A stretch of DNA of 64,000 nucleotides from Trichoplax adhaerens (taxonomy: Eukaryota > Animalia > Placozoa), in NCBI RefSeq assembly GCF_000150275.1, contig NW_002060981.1:62001-126000 (forward strand). The letters run 5' to 3'. A program made the position numbers and the translations under genes. Of the stretch, positions 2,926 to 42,200 are shown in pieces. Position 1 is the stretch's first letter. Each line of letters begins with the position of its first letter. The notes below the pieces were generated by a model. That model was not told the origin of the DNA and ran no database searches. It saw only the letters and a list, made by a program, of their open reading frames with translations.

Positions 2926-7849
<4,924 letters not shown>

Positions 7850-9567: not shown

Positions 9568-10087
9568 AGCAAGCATACGTGCTTTAGTAGGGAGTCATTT
9601 TTCACTACAAGTCAGCCATAGATCAAGTGATGCGCTGCAGTAGGTGAAGCACTAAAACAGTGACAGAAATGATAGTACATGCCTAGACATGAAACGACGT
9701 GACCTTTACCATCACGTACTGGTGTGAGTCGAATCAATGGCGATACGATAGTTGATTACCAAATGGCAAGTATCCATTTCGAGCTAAGCTTAGTGTTATA
9801 TTGGTAGACAGTTTTGTCAAGATGATTACTCTGTTAATGACTTTGTATTATTATTATCAATTAGCGAATTGAGAGTACCGTTGGATGGCGGAATAGCGAG
9901 GATAGTATCTTATTGGATCGCCAAACAAGTTAAAAGCCAAAGAAGTGCTTGACGAAAATAACGACACAGTATCGCAGTGGGTTGATCCAGGGACCCGTGA
10001 GCAAGAGAGAGTGATGCCACTGGCTCTGTTATGACGATGATGTGAAGATGTGACAACCGATGGAACGTCAATCTCCTTGCGACGATG

Positions 10088-10565
10088 CAGTACAGTATAC
10101 TGTACCCTACAGTTGTACAGTTATACTGTACTGTACTGTACTGTACTGTACAGTAGTGCAATCAAGGAATGGTAGTCTCAATATTGTTAATTCAACAATA
10201 AAGTAGGTAATGTACAGTACTGTCCTTAATGTCTGTCCGTACTATACAGTGTACATACAGTACACTGGTAGTCTGGTACAATAGTCTCAATATTGTTAAG
10301 TCAACAATAATAAAGTAGGTACTGTACTGTCCAGGATGTCTGTCCGTACTATACACTGTACACTGTACACTGTACAGTAGACCCAGCCATAATAACCCCG
10401 ATTACTCAGATACTCAGCGTAAATAGCTTATACTGTACAGTGTACAGTACAGTAGTGTAATCAAGGTCTGGTAGTATGGTACAGTACTGTACAGTACAAT
10501 AGTCTCAATATTGTTAAGTCAACAATAATAAAGTAGGTACTGTACTGTCCGTCATGTCTGTCTGT
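10088..10565. repeat. (TACTG)n/(CAGTA)n tracts interleaved with three copies of a ~70-100 bp unit
   Basis: TAGTCTCAATATTGTTAA.TCAACAATAA...AGTAGGTA...TACTGTCC starts at 10173, 10282 and 10500. Pure TACTG run at about 10124-10150. Confidence 0.85.
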
Positions 10566-10805
10566 CGATGGTATTTCAACTATCTGTAGATGCGGTCATG
10601 TGACTCATGCCGCAGTCCGGTCCGGTTCGGTTCATGCGATGCGAGATGATCATGGTACGCGTACTAGAGTTCTTTTTTACTACTATAGTATCAACTGATC
10701 AACTCTGCATGTCGGCTAATACCTTCCATACTGTGGACAGTACTAAATAGCTCTTGGAAAAGAAGTCCACAACCATTTAACCGTTGCTAACTAGGTACCA
10801 ATTAT

Positions 10806-10837
10806 GGACTACTGAAAAAGAATCTTTTCAGTAGTCC
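10806..10837. repeat. Perfect 13-bp inverted repeat (hairpin)
   Basis: GGACTACTGAAAA-AGAATC-TTTTCAGTAGTCC. Confidence 0.9.
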
Positions 10838-13800
10838 CATGGCAGAGAAATGCAAAGCACACTGGCAGAAGCGGTGGAGATTGGACAGCTGCTAGTCGGT
10901 GTTGAGGCTAAAATTGTTATTATTATTAACTGTAAATTACAGTCAATTAACCATAATGAATTGCAACAGAGAGGTCGACGTCATGTTTATGATAGGGACG
11001 GTTGTAAACTTTTTTCCAAGCCTCGTCGTTTACTGTACTGTATAGTGTATAGTTGATCTGTTTTTTTCTCCTGTTGTAGTGGCGTCGACAGAAAAGAAAA
11101 GAGCCTCGGACATACTGGCAGTAACAGTTCGTTTTGCACACTTTTGGTGTAAGAGTGCAGTAGCATAGAGAGCGATTGGATTAGTAGAATTCAGAATGTA
11201 CAGTAATAATTATAAATTTCATTGAAATCATTTGTCATGTCGACAGGACCTGGAGGAGATGAAGGATGATCGAGTGAAAATAGTATACTGTACTGTACTC
11301 TGCAATCGTAAGTAACAAATTACTGATGCAGTAGCTTAACCATGGCCAACTTGTCCTTTGATATAGAATAATATTGCTCTTGGCAGTAAGGCAATGAGGT
11401 CAAGGGGACGACAGCTCATTTTGCGCACTAGATGAGCAATACCAACCGAAAGTTACGGGCAAAATCAACTGCCAGTACCTCCTTTTCCTTTATCAGCAAG
11501 CAACATGATGGACTGGGGACTAGCTGCAACTTTGGTCTTTTCGACTTCAAATTTCGCATCGTAAAAATGAGGTCAATATTGGCAATGATTACATCATTGC
11601 AAGGCCATGGACTACTTCTCGAATTTCTTCCAGTAGTCCTTTGCAAAGCTAATATGCCGCACGCGTGCTCCTACTCAAATGCATCACAGGTGTGCAACCT
11701 TCTTAAGTAACTAAATAGATCTAAATAAATAGACCAAAATGGATGAAATTTTAACCAATCTATAGTAGAGCATAGTGGAGTAAGCGTAAAACACGCTAGA
11801 CGGACCGATGGAAGAAACTTAACGTTGTATCCGTCCTCAATTATGTAATCAATTATATAATGATCTTTCGACCATGATGATGAATTATTAATAATAATAT
11901 TGGTAGAAATATCAATTAGGATGCAATATGATTATTGGACTCCATGACGCAAACGCGTATCACTTCCATATAAGTGATCATTTGTAAATAAAGCACCTGT
12001 GCAATCTGTCTACTACAATCAATCATCGTTGTGGATCAGTCGTAAATGCATCTTGAGCAATACCTATTCTTCCTCGACTATTTTTATCATCAGCATGTTG
12101 AAAGTTAATTAATTGACAATAACAACACAATAGTTAGCGTGTAATAAAGGATAATGTATAAAAATGCCCAACATCTCCTTGCATTTCACACCAGAAAGAT
12201 GGGAAAAATTGGGGATACGGCATAACTTTAACGCTGTACTAGTAAACACAAATTAATAATATGGAATAGTCGCAGTTGAATCATTTTTAATTCAATTCTC
12301 CAGTGACGTCTAGTACAGTAGAGTATTAATAATTTAAAATTGACTATTAGTTGGTCTAGATAGCCATTTGTGTCACCAAAAGAGACATCAATTCTCTTCC
12401 TACTTTTCATTTTTTACTTCCAATTGATAGCTGATATCGATAGCATAACAAGTCGAGACTTTACGATAAGATCAGTCGACCACAATACAAAACCCATATC
12501 AATGAAGAAGAACGCTTTGTAACTTCTTCCATCTTAATCTGTTGATCCAAATCACACTTTGAAAAGTTTATCTACCATCATTGCATCCTACCCATCGAGT
12601 ATAGGACAAGGACAACCAAATGATTTAATGTTTTCCCACTATCGTCACTGCAATTAGAAAGACGAAGAATATCCTTTATTTATTTCTTGGTGCAAACGAA
12701 GAACCGCCATTGCTTTCAATCTATTGGTTCTGTGTCAATAAACCGACAATCAAAAGTTGCCAACTCTAGCGATGGATGGCTGTAAGTACTTCGCAACTCA
12801 CCTAGTTTAATACGTAGAAAACTAAAATAGCAGAAACTTGAAGCCGTTAATAAAAGTAGCATGTTAAGAAGGATATCGTCCAATCTTGATACTGTGCGCG
12901 GTAATACAATAATTTGGATAAATAATTCGATAGATTGTTGCACACCAGGAACATTCGAACCATAACGATAAAGTTTGATCGTGCTATCCTTCTTGAAGTG
13001 GAATCTAGCATAGCAATTTGCAATGATAGATAAATCAATCAAATTGGCTCATTCGTTAGAATAAGTTCTACATAAGATACTCATTATCAATTTGCTACTG
13101 TTTTTATTATTGAGCGCAATAGCGACTAAAATGACTCAAGTTATTGACTAGACGTCGTATTTGAAATAATATTTTTGTTATTTGTTAAACATCCAGTATC
13201 AATGACAGAGACAACCAAAGAGTAGCTCTGATCCAATTTACAAATTCAGTTAACTTTGTCATGAAATTATAAACTATGACTAGGCTAGACAATGATCACC
13301 ATTATTACCGAAGCATGCCCTACCATAATGTAATTTATAAATCCAATTGACATTTTCCAAATCATAAACACCCGGATGATTAGTGCAATGATATATCCTT
13401 TCGAAAAGATAACATGCAATCATGATTACATCTTTGCTTTACTTTGGCTTATTGTATAACTGGAGATGCTGAAACCTACAACTAAGATATAGGGGTTCCA
13501 ATACCTGTGATATTATATTAATTGATGTGTTTTCCATGTGCAATCTGAATAGGTATTCATGAAAATAATTACATTTTCCACTGGCGATGTATCTTTCCTG
13601 TATTTTCATAATTACTCTCTCACCCTACAATAACATATCGAATAGAAGATACCGACTACACGGACATTTCATGATAGTCATGATCCGTAACATATTATCT
13701 CGGAGGACGTAAAATATTACGACCATCCATTGCGATCTTAATAATTTAATTTAGCCTTACCACGACTATTATTCCAAAGCTAAATAAAACAATTTGCTAA

Positions 13801-36970: not shown

Positions 36971-37793
36971 GGAATTTTTCATTTTGTAGGCCTTGAATAA
37001 TGCTGGAATGAATTAAGCAAAGGGCATGAACGCATACATGAAATGCCTGTATCCCTTCTAATCTCTATCAGTGTCAAGCTTTTGCAGTAATTACTATTCT
37101 AGATGCCATAGCCAATGTTGGAATGGATTGCATAAAGGATATCAGAATAGAGTCATGTTAGAGTATAAATAGGATAATACCGTTCCCTCTGATGTTTATT
37201 ATAGCCAACCTAGTAATAATTACTTGCAGTCTAGGACTAACGTTGGCATTAATTAGATCAAGAATATAACTGTATATTAGAAATCAATTTGATTATTACA
37301 ACTGTAAGAGTTAGGTAGAGTATTTGTGTGAATTATTTTCTATTGAGCTACTATCACGCGGAAACTATAAATTGTTTCTTCTTACTTCACGGCTAGAAAT
37401 AAAATTTTTTTTATGCCGTAAGGGTATGGTACAGCAAGAATAATTATGCCCTCACATCGTCATCACGGTTTATTGCTCCATGGTTAGATTGCTATAATGT
37501 TGATTTAAGAGACATCAGAATATGATAGAATATGAATTAAATAACTCCTTCAGATCTCTATTGTAGTAAAACCACTAATTAAGTCTGATCTAATCTGCAT
37601 GAAAGAGAGTAACGCATGTGCAGTATACTGAACAGAATATTAATGAATTAGTTACATTTCCTTTCTATATTCGTTGTACTAACCTGATGACTAAATCTCC
37701 ACTGATGAAGTAATCACGGTTGTATAAGAACAATAACCTCCAGAACGATTTGATAATATTGCAGAACGAAGCCAGAGTACCAGTAAAGTAAAA

Positions 37794-39256
37794 ATGGAGA
37801 AACATGAAGAGGATGCTATTAAGGAATGTTGGTCCGAACTTGTTAAGTCCATGCCGGTAGACCATATGAAAAATAAGCTATTTTCGAAGCGTATATTAGA
37901 GATATCTGATCTTGAAGCTATTGACGCTATGAATACTACTAATAAAAAAAACCAAGAAATTCTAAAATTAGTAACGCGATCACAATCTCCTGAAACCTAT
38001 AATATTTTCATTACTGCTTTGAGGGAAATCCCAACTAGAAATAATATCTTAGCGGACATGGTTGAAAAATGTAATAAAAAGAGCGTATCTTATAACTCAA
38101 GCAGCAATACTGCGTCTGCCAATATAAATGCAGACCAAACAGGTAAGCTTAATCGTAGGTTTAATATTAGTTGTTGGAAAAAATAAAACAATTTCACTAC
38201 GGTATGCGATAAATCCGTTGCTATCTATCAATCTATTACTAATTATATATTTTTAAGGACTAATTGTGATAGCAGAAATCATAAAATCAATTACTGCAAA
38301 TAAAGATAGTATTCGTTAATCAGATAACAAGATTACACCATGTTTGTCTAATGTTTAATATTAATATTGTAAATGATGAAACCAAGTTAGTCATAAATCT
38401 CATAGAATATCAGTAATGATTTCGCTATTACCGCATACTTCAATCTTGATAGCGCTCACTAGTTCGAGCAATCAGATAAAATTTAAACCATATTGATGTT
38501 ACATGATTTTATTTATCGGTTGTTTAACATTGTTTATTTAAACTGATATTACAGACTCTGTTGGAGTTGACAAATCCTCTGCTTGCGGTGAGAAATGGGA
38601 CGTCTTTTTGAGTTATTCGTGGAATAATAAAGACGAAGTAAAGAAAATTAAGAGTTACTTGGAACAGCAAAAGTGGACAGTTTGGATAGATGATGATCGT
38701 GTTGCAGGTGGTCAGAAATTGGATTCAGTTCTTTCAAATGGAATTGAGGCATGCAAGGTAAAATCATGAAGAACGTCGACAACCAGTACTCGCTACTACA
38801 TCGTAGGCTATTTTTCAGCGACAATATTACCTCTGAATAGGCTCTGATTCTGTAACTAATTGCTGATCCAATAAGTTGATGCACAGTTTTAGATCACTAC
38901 TTACTTTTTGCTTTTGATTAACTTCGATCTTTAATTCTGGCTAGGTGTTCGTTCCGTGCTTAAGTAGATCGTATGCTAATTCCGATAACTGTTACAGTGA
39001 ATTGTCACATGCTAAAGACCTCAAAAAGTTTATTATACCAATCGTTCTTGGTGATGTGGATCCTAAAAACGGTGGTCTTAAAGGCAAAAATGGTGACCTA
39101 AATTTTAAAATCACTGGCCTTACGTATATTAAGATAAAAGACTTTGAAGATAAAGCAACGACGAATAAAAAACTAAATGATTTAAATAAGGCAGTACATC
39201 GCCGATTAATAGGATATGATGAAGAAGCATCCAGCGTCAACACGCCATACAAGTAA
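37794..39256 (+). CDS. CARD (death-fold) + TIR (TIR_2/SARM-like) protein, 287 aa
   Basis: Exons 37794-38142, 38555-38757, 38945-39256, GT-AG and phase-consistent. The N-terminus has a CARD-like helical pattern (ELVKSM..KLFSKRIL..LEAI..T.NKKNQEILKLV..TYNIFITAL). TIR: WDVFLSYSW, VWID...GG, GIEACKVFVPCLSRSYANSDNCYSEL, IIPIVL. Confidence 0.9.
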
Positions 39257-42200
39257 ATATTATTTACTTCTTTTAATACACTGCAGTCAATATACGTATA
39301 ATTTAGCTGCGGAATAGCCGAAAGCTACCAGAACCATTGAAAGCTAGACTGCATGAAATACATATGCTTTTCGATTTACTGTACTTGTTAAGATAAGTAA
39401 AATTTTAAGTGCGATAAAGGATTCTTCGATCTATAGCGAATATGGCATTTACGATATATTATTATTAATCGCGCAGTTTACCAATAATTATAATGTAGGG
39501 TACTCTAGATACTAAACAACTTGCTACAACATTTTATGGTTAGATTAGTTATGTAACATACTACATTTAGTTGAATAGATGCAACTCTGATATGCATTTC
39601 ATACTCAGCCGTACATAAGCATCGTTCTATTCAGACCTTTGCAATAAAAGGCTTTAGGATGCAATTGCAGCGAAATCATGATATTATACAAGATTATAAT
39701 ATTATGGCGTATCGATTTTTACGTTTATTTGTTAATTTTAAATTCTGTAAGCAACATTTAGCTTTCTGTTGAAAGACCTTGTGTAAGTATAAACCAGTTT
39801 TATGCTAAAGTAATACCTGAGTCATAACGTCATTACTCCATAGATTCCTACAGTTGCTTAGCTATTTACTGATTTTGATGTGATATAATTTATGTTAGGA
39901 CAATTACAATAGTTAGGTTGAAATGGTAAAAATGAGCATTTATTACCTTTAGCGTGTAGATATGCGATTTTTTTTATCCTTATATCCGGTATTTGTGATA
40001 TGAATAAATCGATCTTCTTAATTGCCGTTTCAATTCTTAACTACATCATAGAATGACAATGTAAGATATGCTATATCGATCCACTGTTCTAGAATCTATC
40101 CATTACTTTGTTAGTACAGTATATACTTGTATAATAGGAATTTGTGGTCGTTTTCCGATAGACAAGGATAGATAAAGCATTACAGAAAAGCAGATATTTT
40201 GCCAGCATTCCTCTGATTGGGATGCCTTATGCGTGTATACATTTTATCAACTTCGAATAGTAATAGGAGCTGTTTTAAGAGACAGTTCTGAACAATTGAG
40301 ATCACTAATGTTCTAGAGTCATTATTTTAAAAATGTTCTGCTTCTTAAGTCCAATCAAAGATACAGTTATAGTATTTTTTAAAGTATTAATGGCGTATCT
40401 TGCAATAGAAATTTAAAAGCATACATGATAATAGTCTCGAAGGATTAAGCAACAACTTCTATCAATCAATATCTATGATCTAGTTTCAAAATCTATGGCC
40501 TTTGGCATATAATCCATCTTTCCATATCATAGCTTCAATTATTAAGCGCGTACATTAAGCCTTTGCTTAAATCTATCCAAATCTTGTATTTTGTGATGTA
40601 AATGATAGACCGTTATACTATCTAGAATACTTCGATAAATTAGTCAATTCCATGTGATAGCAATTGTAACTGCATGATATTTAATTATAGTCTAGTAAAA
40701 TCGGTTTTAGCTTTTATTATTAAATAGTGATAAGATAGCATGAAGACACCGATGACTTTATAGTTTATTACAAAAATTCTATAAGATTTCCACTGCATAT
40801 ATGGCTTTTGATTTTTTAGGTTCCATAGCTTCTATTGATGGCCAGTATTACCATTGATTTTATAGTATTGTCCTAAGCCGTCTATGATTTTTATCAAGAT
40901 ATCAATCTTATGTCATTAGAAATGAAAAGGCTAAAAATATTTTCGCTAGAGCTTAATTAAATTAGCTTATAGCTTCCAATCTTGGATGATGGTGATATAC
41001 TGTAATATTAAATCGTCCACGATTTCCTAAAATCAAGATCATATGAATTGAAAATTTCAACTTTACAGTGCGTAGATTGATACCGGATGCAGCCAGACTA
41101 TATATAATCTCTGTTATGATGTAACGTTCTTAATATATTACTAATAGCAAGCCTAGTTTGCCTTCAACCTCTACTGTAATTTTTAATACAGATAGCTAGG
41201 TACAGACATTTTAACTATCAAGGAAATCATTGGTAACAATTAGTAGGTATTATGACCTGAAATTGAAGTAATAGTGACCTATATGATTTTATGTGATAGT
41301 ATTACAATATCGATTATGAATTTAGAATGACGGACCGATAATAGATAGATGCACCGGAATAATTTTAAGCCTGTAAAGCCTTAGATCGTTGATACTTTAT
41401 TGAAATTTAGAACTAGCGTGAATTCGTTCCTACCGGCAGAGCTTTCACACATGATCTAAGATGGTATATAGTGATTACCTTATTCACGTTACTTAATTTA
41501 AAGAAACTTTACGATAATTTCTTTGTGTTTAGAGAGAGGGAGATAGCTACCGTACCAACTCTTATAAATACTGTAAATTTAAAATATTTGCCTAAAATTA
41601 TTGCAAGACTAACCCAATACTTTTACTAAAGAGGATTCGTTCTAGATTAGATTTATAGTATATGAATATTTCTATCATTTTTCACATAAATATAAATACC
41701 CATACAATCTGGCAATGTTTATATTCCAAATCATTTCGTAGCATGTCATCCTACGGACATTAGAAAGCTGGTGACTTGTGGCTAAAGTTTTATAAATCAT
41801 GATGGAGATACTATCATAGACAATGGAAATTTAACACTGATGCTAAATAAAAGCTTTATTTACTCCAAGCCTTATTGAAAAATTAAATGAATTTATGGTT
41901 ATGTTAAATTACTTCAGATATTTCAGATCATTGTTATAGTAGATTACATTAGTGTTACGAGCTAAACAAAAAAACTAATCAAGCCTTCAGTTCCTATATC
42001 GCATAATAAATTGTCACATATTTTACGGAGACTTTGTTAATAGACATTTTGAAATCTATAAGCTAAATTTTTTCCCCTGGTCTAATGCCTTTACCTAATG
42101 TATCGTTATTCGCCTACTTGTTAATCATTTTTACTTCAGATACGATCAAGTCTTTTTCATATATAATAAGATTTTATGCAATATTGTAAGTCGAGTAGCT

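Follow-up and report, generated by a model that had tools for sequence, protein, structure and literature searches.

A spliced CARD-TIR gene of Trichoplax adhaerens with a conserved Ser/Glu pair, a possible CARD-recruited NAD+-cleaving effector

Placozoans were reported to have no transmembrane TIR receptor, TLR or Death-domain IRAK, and to encode many Apaf-1-like CARD-bearing NB-ARC proteins, with CARD sensors outnumbering CARD-caspases (Kamm et al. 2019, PMC6321704). The same study counted 16 TIR proteins in Trichoplax sp. H2 and described two placozoan TIR+CARD proteins, which were called MyD88-like. In bacteria, gene pairs were described in which one Death-like domain is carried by a STAND NTPase and another by a TIR protein (Kaur et al. 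2021, PMC8195603). Here, we analyzed a stretch of 64,000 nucleotides (nt) of the Trichoplax adhaerens genome (assembly GCF_000150275.1, contig NW_002060981.1, positions 62,001 to 126,000 of the forward strand; hereafter, the window), in which a gene at positions 37794-39256 encodes an N-terminal CARD, a linker and a C-terminal TIR domain. This CARD-TIR gene is real, spliced and expressed. Its TIR domain carries a Ser and a Glu that align with those of TIR domains cleaving nicotinamide adenine dinucleotide (NAD+), and we tentatively favor the reading that the protein may be a CARD-recruited, NAD+-cleaving effector.

The gene is not a new find, since it had been annotated before and its combination of CARD and TIR has been in print since 2019; a literature search returned no paper naming this gene or using the phrase "CARD-TIR". 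The orthologue in Trichoplax sp. H2 carries exactly the Pfam domains of the two published TIR+CARD proteins, a pairing made by domains and by the count of two, not by locus tag. Added here are a checked gene model, a residue-level alignment of the catalytic pair, a caveat concerning a missing Trp, and two opposed models of function.

Gene structure, transcripts and divergence

Direct reading of positions 37500-39600 gave three exons on the + strand (37794-38142, 38555-38757 and 38945-39256), the lengths of which (349, 203 and 312 nt) add up to 864 nt, corresponding to 287 codons plus a stop codon. An in-frame stop is located at 37755-7, upstream of the ATG. The initial annotation of the window had described the same arrangement, namely three exons encoding a CARD, a Ser/Asn-rich linker and a C-terminal TIR domain, and the motifs it quoted (DVFLSYS, VWID and SRSYANSDNCYSEL) were all found in the sequence; its remark that the open reading frame list splits the gene was also correct, as the mechanical frames are pieces of 130, 53 and 103 amino acids. 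The exon joining it assumed was then seen in assembled transcript contigs of three different studies (X4, X5 and X14, of which X14 was recorded as RNA-Seq). These contigs skip introns of exactly 412 and 187 nt with GT..AG ends, indicating that the exons are joined in RNA, and the spliced contigs span from before 37700 to beyond 39119. Contigs of X9 cover the introns and look like DNA or unspliced RNA.

The exon translations, together with the Asp encoded by the split codon, reproduce piece by piece the 287-residue T. adhaerens protein TRIADDRAFT_62327 (XP_002118283.1, UniProt B3SDH1, "TIR domain-containing protein"). With the CARD exon as query, exhaustive HMMER searching identified the H2 orthologue TrispH2_008615 (P0001, 274 residues), whose CARD is 99% identical and whose sequence spans the two exon junctions that had been predicted. 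Full-length analyses were run on these two database proteins, TRIADDRAFT_62327 (P0016) and P0001, and the assembly examined comprised 105,631,681 bases in 1414 contigs. For TRIADDRAFT_62327, an AlphaFold2 (AF2) model was computed from an alignment of 20 rows containing placozoan CARDs and TIRs, and its mean predicted local distance difference test score (pLDDT) was 85.4. The features of the gene, in window coordinates, are as follows.

37649..37793, + strand: 5' untranslated region (UTR), minimum extent; spliced X14 and X4 contigs extend 51 and 39 nt upstream of 37700, with no further joint
37794..38142, + strand: exon 1, carrying the ATG, the CARD and the beginning of the linker; phase 1 at its 3' end; joint 38142/38555 seen in 3 runs
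37794..38078, + strand: CARD domain, residues 1-95; Pfam PF00619, AF2 model and Apaf-1 CARD match
38103..38142, + strand: first part of the Ser/Asn-rich disordered linker, residues 104-117; pLDDT <50 at 107-109 and 113-127
38143..38554, + strand: intron 1, 412 nt, GT..AG (GT at 38143, AG at 38553-4); skipped in X4, X5 and X14 contigs
38555..38757, + strand: exon 2, coding for the last linker residues and for the TIR from beta-A to alpha-B, its first half; matches TIR_2 positions 1-51 at E 4e-10
38596..38757, + strand: first half of the TIR, residues 131-184; AF2 elements 131-136, 139-154 and 174-182
38611..38613, + strand: Ser136 codon, equivalent of SARM1 Ser567; DVFLSY on DVFISY in the alignment of exon 2 with the SARM1 TIR
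38758..38944, + strand: intron 2, 187 nt, GT..AG (GT at 38758, AG at 38943-4), phase 0; skipped in X4, X5 and X14; splits the TIR before beta-C
38945..39256, + strand: exon 3, with the second half of the TIR, the C-terminal tail and the TAA at 39254-6; TIR_2 profile positions 54-109
38945..39211, + strand: second half of the TIR, residues 185-273; AF2 elements 183-190, 198-209, 217-219, 246-248 and 254-273
38999..39001, + strand: Glu203 codon, putative catalytic Glu in helix alpha-C; aligned with TIR-1 (HKEL), Cat1, L6, Roq1 and TLR15
39257..39400, + strand: 3' UTR, minimum extent; 39090-39340 covered in X4 and X5, with X4 contigs extending at least to 39400

A possible upstream open reading frame (37618-37713, +; ATGs at 37687 and 37705, stop at 37711-3) lies inside the transcript-defined 5' UTR.

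Exactly two CARD-TIR genes were found in Trichoplax. The second, TRIADDRAFT_59582 (P0019) on C1404, is 31% identical to the first and has the same three-exon layout, with a CARD of 29.9 bits on its first exon and with intron 2 at a common position. About 27 kilobases (kb) from this intact paralogue, a degenerate copy of its exon 3 with two stops (C1404:1789397-1792672, match 1790897-1791172, -) is probably a pseudogene fragment.

Window positions 37794-39256 were also compared with positions 10001-11425 of NOWV01000152.1 from Trichoplax sp. H2. The 5' flank was identical (494/494), and the introns differed at 2 of 599 positions (intron 1 was identical at 411/412), giving 2/1093 for flank and introns together. 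Within the 274 shared codons, 8 replaced codons were found versus 1 synonymous change, and three of the replacements (T158K, D164N and K171D) are located in or next to the beta-B/alpha-B loop. Furthermore, an 11-nt insertion in H2 after window position 39213 shortens the tail after the last helix, so that the protein ends 13 residues early. Such an excess of replacements resembles the rapid evolution that proteins of the immune system often show; it is only suggestive, given the low counts and a 3' flank that has diverged as well. Further haplotypes with more exon differences were present in X4 and X14.

CARD, TIR_2 domain and catalytic-type residues

Exon 1 matched the Pfam CARD model (PF00619) with an E value of 1.9e-9 and 37.9 bits, and the full TRIADDRAFT_62327 scored 42.8 bits (cut-off 23.9), while the Pfam Death-domain model gave no match in the exon scan or in TRIADDRAFT_62327. 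In the AF2 model, residues 1-103 were folded, with pLDDT of 90-98, into helices 3-11, 13-19, 22-31, 37-44, 49-62, 66-77 and 84-103, the CARD being a six-helix bundle with a split helix 1 (3-11 and 13-19). The Apaf-1 CARD superposed on model residues 1-95 with Z 15.2 and a root-mean-square deviation (rmsd) of 1.7 Å over 92/93 residues (VIA-align), and a second Apaf-1 match reached Z 15.1. When the profile of the 20-row alignment was searched against PDB, the CARDs of Apaf-1, CED-3 and RAIDD were matched with E values of 5e-10 to 2e-7, extending to 2e-6 with BCL10 included. The N-terminus, which the initial annotation had called CARD-like, is a CARD, and it models as a death fold. The linker that follows, about 30 residues long and Ser/Asn-rich, is disordered in the model at residues 107-127.

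The Trichoplax genome contains at least 24 CARD exons. The CARDs nearest to that of the CARD-TIR gene (42-48% identical) belong to the CARD-Death protein TRIADDRAFT_58059, which has a RAIDD-like layout, to the CARD-CARD-Death protein TRIADDRAFT_61417, and to CARD-only proteins. TRIADDRAFT_58059 is located on C1408, and TRIADDRAFT_61417 at C1392:44500-54499 (exons 1771-2166, 3067-3330 and 5041-5307, +). Also among the closest CARD paralogues are two tandem CARD exons, 7.6 kb apart, at C1398:74000-83999 (2020-2439 and 9651-9998, +). The CARDs on C1398, C1392 and C1408 form a small placozoan-specific CARD subfamily that could share an interaction network with the CARD-TIR proteins.

When Pfam was run exon by exon, exon 2 covered TIR_2 positions 1-51 (E 4e-10) and exon 3 covered positions 54-109. 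Since the profile continues exactly across intron 2, a chance arrangement is very unlikely. The TIR domain of TRIADDRAFT_62327 scored 76.0 bits on TIR_2 (PF13676, cut-off 28) versus 38.9 bits on the TLR/MyD88/plant TIR model. In a PDB search with the single sequence, the significant matches were all NAD+-cleaving TIRs, that is, Cat1 (1.6e-6), L6 (3e-5), L7 and Roq1; weaker matches were RPP1, AbTIR and SARM1, and SIGIRR, the only scaffold-type TIR, came last at E 0.92. Neither MyD88 nor any TLR appeared among these single-sequence matches at E <= 1. The family profile matched C. elegans TIR-1 (E 5e-12) and SARM1 (about 3e-7), and MyD88 was absent from its best 60 matches. Taken together with the Pfam scores, these results agree with the resemblance to SARM1, plant and bacterial TIR_2 domains that had been noticed at the outset. 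Searched alone against PDB sequences, exon 2 gave SARM1 and AbTIR matches below significance, and exon 3 gave only a chance match to neuroserpin (E 0.39). In a feature search, the nearest Atlas clusters held TIR_2 proteins from bacteria, haptophytes and rotifers, among them bacterial fusions of an effector-associated domain (EAD7/EAD8) with a TIR.

Residues 131-273 were modelled as an alpha/beta TIR fold. Model residues 129-275 superposed best on the TIR of RPV1 (Z 17.9, rmsd 2.5 Å over 143 residues), followed by RUN1 (17.6), RPP1 (16.8), Hydra TRR-2 (16.8), SPARTA (16.6), SARM1 residues 561-700 (16.5), MyD88 (16.0) and IL-1RAcPb (15.5).

With respect to the catalytic-type residues, Glu203 (in Cys-Tyr-Ser-Glu-Leu) is aligned with the catalytic Glu of TIR-1, which is the SARM1 orthologue of C. 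elegans (in His-Lys-Glu-Leu, corresponding to SARM1 E642), and with those of Cat1, flax L6 and Roq1. Ser136 (DVFLSY) aligns with SARM1 Ser567 (DVFISY), which was described as required for NAD+-cleaving activity and as located 2.6 Å from the catalytic Glu (bioRxiv 10.1101/2025.04.09.647920). Among 42 related TIR domains, Ser136 is invariant and Glu203 is kept in 40; both residues are kept in the paralogue P0019, the Ank-TIR protein P0018 and a large invertebrate TIR family. The Glu is not kept by default, as Gln occupies its position in a Trichoplax ANK/ARM-TIR-SAM protein (C1413:2447784-2451146, a 690-residue frame with its TIR at 1486-1899, +), the TIR of which is, judged from this substitution, probably non-catalytic. 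Note that the general idea of Glu-bearing animal TIRs as enzymes is already in a 2026 preprint, according to which the catalytic Glu is retained by the majority of eukaryotic TIRs that do not belong to the TLR/IL-1R clades (Hurieva et al. 2026, bioRxiv 10.64898/2026.04.20.719644).

Enzymatic effector or scaffold

In the model that we favor, which is plausible though short of probable, the CARD would be the input. It would dock, by homotypic CARD-CARD assembly, onto oligomerized CARD proteins such as Apaf-1-like NB-ARC sensors or CARD-Death adaptors, and docking would bring the TIRs together, with the flexible linker letting them pack. Once clustered, the TIRs would build an active site with Ser136 and Glu203 at its center, and NAD+ cleavage there would lead either to NAD+ depletion or to an ADP-ribose-derived signal. 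Enzyme activity, its dependence on clustering and the way in which the signal flows are inferred here; the CARD-input model is favored on account of the TIR_2 class, the conserved catalytic pair, the bacterial precedent, the excess of CARD sensors over CARD-caspases and the reported lack of transmembrane TIR receptors. Since no transmembrane TIR receptor was found in placozoans (Kamm et al. 2019), there would be nothing of that kind to feed a MyD88-style adaptor. As for the base rate, Glu-bearing TIRs of animals, other than those of TLRs, have been reported as capable of producing cyclic ADP-ribose (cADPR) (Hurieva et al. 2026).

A wider proposal, which we consider somewhat unlikely, is that the two placozoan CARD-TIR proteins would serve as caspase-independent outputs of the expanded Apaf-1-like CARD sensors, with CARD assembly switching on NAD+ cleavage by the TIR. 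If true, this would be the first case in animals in which catalysis by a TIR is driven by a death-fold signalosome, and it would be the eukaryotic counterpart to the bacterial pairs of Death-like-domain sensor and TIR protein. A CARD-switched TIR enzyme would also link death-fold signalosomes with TIR NAD+ chemistry, both of them pillars of innate immunity, in one of the simplest animals.

Several observations weigh against an enzymatic effector. The modelled fold confirms a TIR domain without telling enzyme from scaffold, since the Z values of 17.9-15.5 span enzymes and scaffolds alike, and the family profile that found TIR-1 also matched the TIRs of TLR15/TLR2, TLR6 and TLR1 (E 2e-11 to 2e-5). 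The position four residues before Glu203 is occupied by Asn199 (Asn-Cys-Tyr-Ser-Glu), as is the rule clade-wide, and not by the Trp of SARM1 (W638) and AbTIR (W204), which we take to be important. No CARD partner, CARD-NTPase or immune cluster was found beside the gene in the window or at the syntenic H2 locus. Glu203 also aligns with the Glu of the TLR15/TLR2 TIR, indicating that this residue is necessary but not sufficient. In E. coli, only 12 of the 61 Glu-bearing animal TIRs tested made cADPR, in a Glu-dependent manner, and TLR2, IL-1R9 and IL-1R10 keep the Glu yet were inactive; the tables of that study list Trichoplax TIRs, while the tested set has none and B3SDH1 is not named (Hurieva et al. 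2026). The Glu, the key argument of the enzyme reading, is therefore weakly diagnostic. The initial annotation had proposed an oligomerization-triggered NAD+-cleaving enzyme with an intact catalytic Glu. Of this interpretation, three points that could have told against it came out in its favor (the N-terminus models as a death fold, the Glu of the CYSEL motif aligns with those of TIR-1, L6, Roq1 and Cat1, and the exons are joined), as did the separation from MyD88, whereas the novelty and the use of the Glu as a sign of an enzyme did not hold.

The opposed model is that of a MyD88-like scaffold adaptor, in which the TIR would receive the input through TIR-TIR contact with an activated TIR sensor and the CARD would be the output, nucleating partners such as the two CARD-caspases or CARD-Death adaptors, with no catalysis; we regard it as a serious possibility, though a doubtful one. 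MyD88, the only characterized animal protein with a death fold and a TIR, works in this way, which is the direction opposite to that of the CARD-input model. The data agree with either direction to about the same degree. The order of death fold and then TIR is shared with MyD88, the TIR of which superposes nearly as well as those of enzymes (Z 16.0), and the TLR matches of the family profile and the missing Trp are also expected under this model. In addition, the CARD resembles the caspase-recruiting CARDs of Apaf-1, CED-3 and RAIDD, cytosolic Trichoplax TIR proteins such as the TIR plus P-loop NTPase frame on C986 (see below) could act upstream, and the published label is MyD88-like (Kamm et al. 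2019). On the other hand, there is no Death domain and no MyD88 orthology here, and no Death-domain IRAK in placozoans (Kamm et al. 2019); Ser136 and Glu203 are strictly conserved over a wide family, although a pure scaffold would not need them; the TIR_2 score is twice the TLR/MyD88-type score; and the PDB sequence search (E <= 1) did not return MyD88.

Since the evidence for an enzyme and that for a scaffold are not mutually exclusive, the protein might be a dual-function node, in which the TIR would assemble and catalyze and the CARD would receive and propagate, so that NAD+ cleavage and caspase recruitment would occur in one signalosome. The TIR of TLR4, a classic scaffold, was reported to produce cADPR (Hurieva et al. 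2026). Being the least economical reading, however, a dual-function node is unlikely. It is quite improbable that the protein is a negative regulator or decoy capping CARD or TIR assemblies, like CARD-only or SIGIRR-type proteins, and evolving fast under pathogen pressure. Its small size with no other effector domain, the 8 replacements versus 1 synonymous change between T. adhaerens and H2 against 2/1093 in introns and 5' flank, and the shortened tail of the H2 allele are consistent with a decoy, but the catalytic-type residues are conserved, the only decoy-type match was SIGIRR at E 0.92, and the numbers behind the replacement excess are small. Finally, we rejected as extremely improbable that the gene is non-functional, or that it stems from misannotation or from contaminating bacteria: although bacteria often have TIRs of the TIR_2 type, two placozoan lineages with conserved synteny keep the frame open, the GT..AG introns are spliced out in transcripts of three studies, and a paralogue has the same exon layout.

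Relatives and comparison with known systems

Relatives outside placozoans were reached only by profile search, which revealed a large invertebrate Death-TIR_2 or "tirA-like" family with the same Asn-Cys-x-x-Glu motif. Word-indexed homologue searches, with the H2 orthologue or with its TIR region alone, returned only the query itself and one Ank-TIR protein, a blank that says little. An environmental Ank-TIR (ENA ERZ23486757 scaffold_110028, 646-1467, +) has a TIR 49% identical to that of the CARD-TIR protein and shares Val-Phe-Val-Pro-Cys-Leu-Ser and Asn-Ser-Asp-Asn-Cys with it. A metagenomic protein, P0028 (JGI 3300050598, Ga0509103_011924, 106-1287, +), is a CARD-TIR-CARD in one uninterrupted frame, with a TIR of the Death-TIR_2/tirA-like family. 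Considering this protein and the paralogue, the combination of CARD and TIR_2 is not unique to the gene studied here, and it occurs in two different TIR lineages. A tree was constructed from related TIR domains, and PDB profile and structure comparisons served to relate the TIR to SARM1, MyD88 and bacterial TIRs. The Trichoplax CARD-TIR clade had long branches and weak support in this tree, and no origin or history was thus drawn from it.

Other TIR loci were observed in Trichoplax. At C1410:4250504-4253842, a Death exon (2131-2397, -; 50.3 bits) is followed closely, on the same strand, by a TIR_2 that is complete within one exon (1408-1848, -; 86.4 bits) and keeps the Glu. This layout is the MyD88 domain order, with a TIR of the widespread invertebrate Gln-Met-Gly-Gly-Gly-Asp family, and the exons are possibly separate genes; no protein with a Death domain and a TIR was listed for placozoans (Kamm et al. 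2019). Nearly identical TIR exons, downstream of a CARD-like piece and a Death-domain exon (33.8 bits), are present at C1246:3000-10000 and C1398:119000-127500, the former on a 10-kb contig and the latter on a large scaffold beside a run of N; these are probably an assembly duplicate or alternative haplotype, not two genes. At C986:2068-4179, one frame (1501-2112, +) contains the second half of a TIR, with the Glu kept, and then the P-loop motif Gly-Pro-Glu-Asn-Val-Gly-Lys-Ser. It may be a TIR-NTPase sensor with a plant-TNL-like layout, the Pfam GTPase/AAA matches being weak and the contig short. The neighbors of the CARD-TIR gene at the syntenic H2 locus are a C2-domain gene, RPS24, a CHCH gene, a gene for a 177-residue protein and a C-type lectin.

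Compared with MyD88, the CARD-TIR protein is likewise a small cytosolic protein with an N-terminal death fold, a linker and a C-terminal TIR, and the TIR folds superpose (Z 16.0). However, it has a CARD where MyD88 has a Death domain, its TIR is a TIR_2 with the enzymatic Ser/Glu pair, and there is no match at the sequence level. Lacking a Death domain and with no MyD88 among its sequence matches, TRIADDRAFT_62327 is not a MyD88 orthologue, as had been held from the start. The invertebrate Death-TIR_2 proteins (Capitella CAPTEDRAFT_72501 and Haliotis 'tirA-like') share with it a death fold plus TIR_2, the Asn-Cys-x-x-Glu motif and the beta-A Ser. They differ in having a very conserved, often tandem TIR with a Gln-Met-Gly-Gly-Gly-Asp loop, and the Trichoplax CARD-TIRs fall outside them in the tree, on the long, weakly supported branches mentioned above.

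The closest structural matches are the plant TIRs (RPV1, RUN1 and RPP1, Z 17.9-16.8), and plant TIRs such as L6 and Roq1 are also significant sequence matches with the Glu aligned. Plant TIR activity is switched on by induced oligomerization. Plant TIRs, which occur either by themselves or in fusions with NB-ARC-LRR, differ from the CARD-TIR protein in their Trp-Cys-x-x-Glu motif and in the Arg that follows the Ser of beta-A; we know of no CARD in plants. The bacterial bDLD3/EAD-TIR proteins with their STAND NTPases are alike in being small fusions of an adaptor domain and a TIR, for which recruitment by the same domain on the NTPase sensor was proposed (Kaur et al. 2021). In bacteria, sensor and effector lie side by side, whereas the CARD-TIR gene is without a CARD-NTPase neighbor in the window and at the H2 locus, the CARD-NB-ARC genes being located elsewhere in placozoan genomes (Kamm et al. 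2019), and its adaptor domain is a true eukaryotic CARD that is most Apaf-1-like.

Similarities to SARM1 and TIR-1 include the profile matches (E 5e-12 for TIR-1 and about 3e-7 for SARM1), the aligned Ser136 and Glu203, and the structural match (Z 16.5). SARM1 activity depends on TIR clustering, which is driven by octamers of its SAM domains. The CARD-TIR protein has neither ARM nor SAM and is not orthologous to SARM1; the four-residue, Trp-bearing segment of SARM1 is absent, with Asn199 in its place. The clustering domain would here be the CARD, and if this is true, the protein, with two domains in 287 residues, would be a compact model for the activation of an animal TIR by induced proximity.

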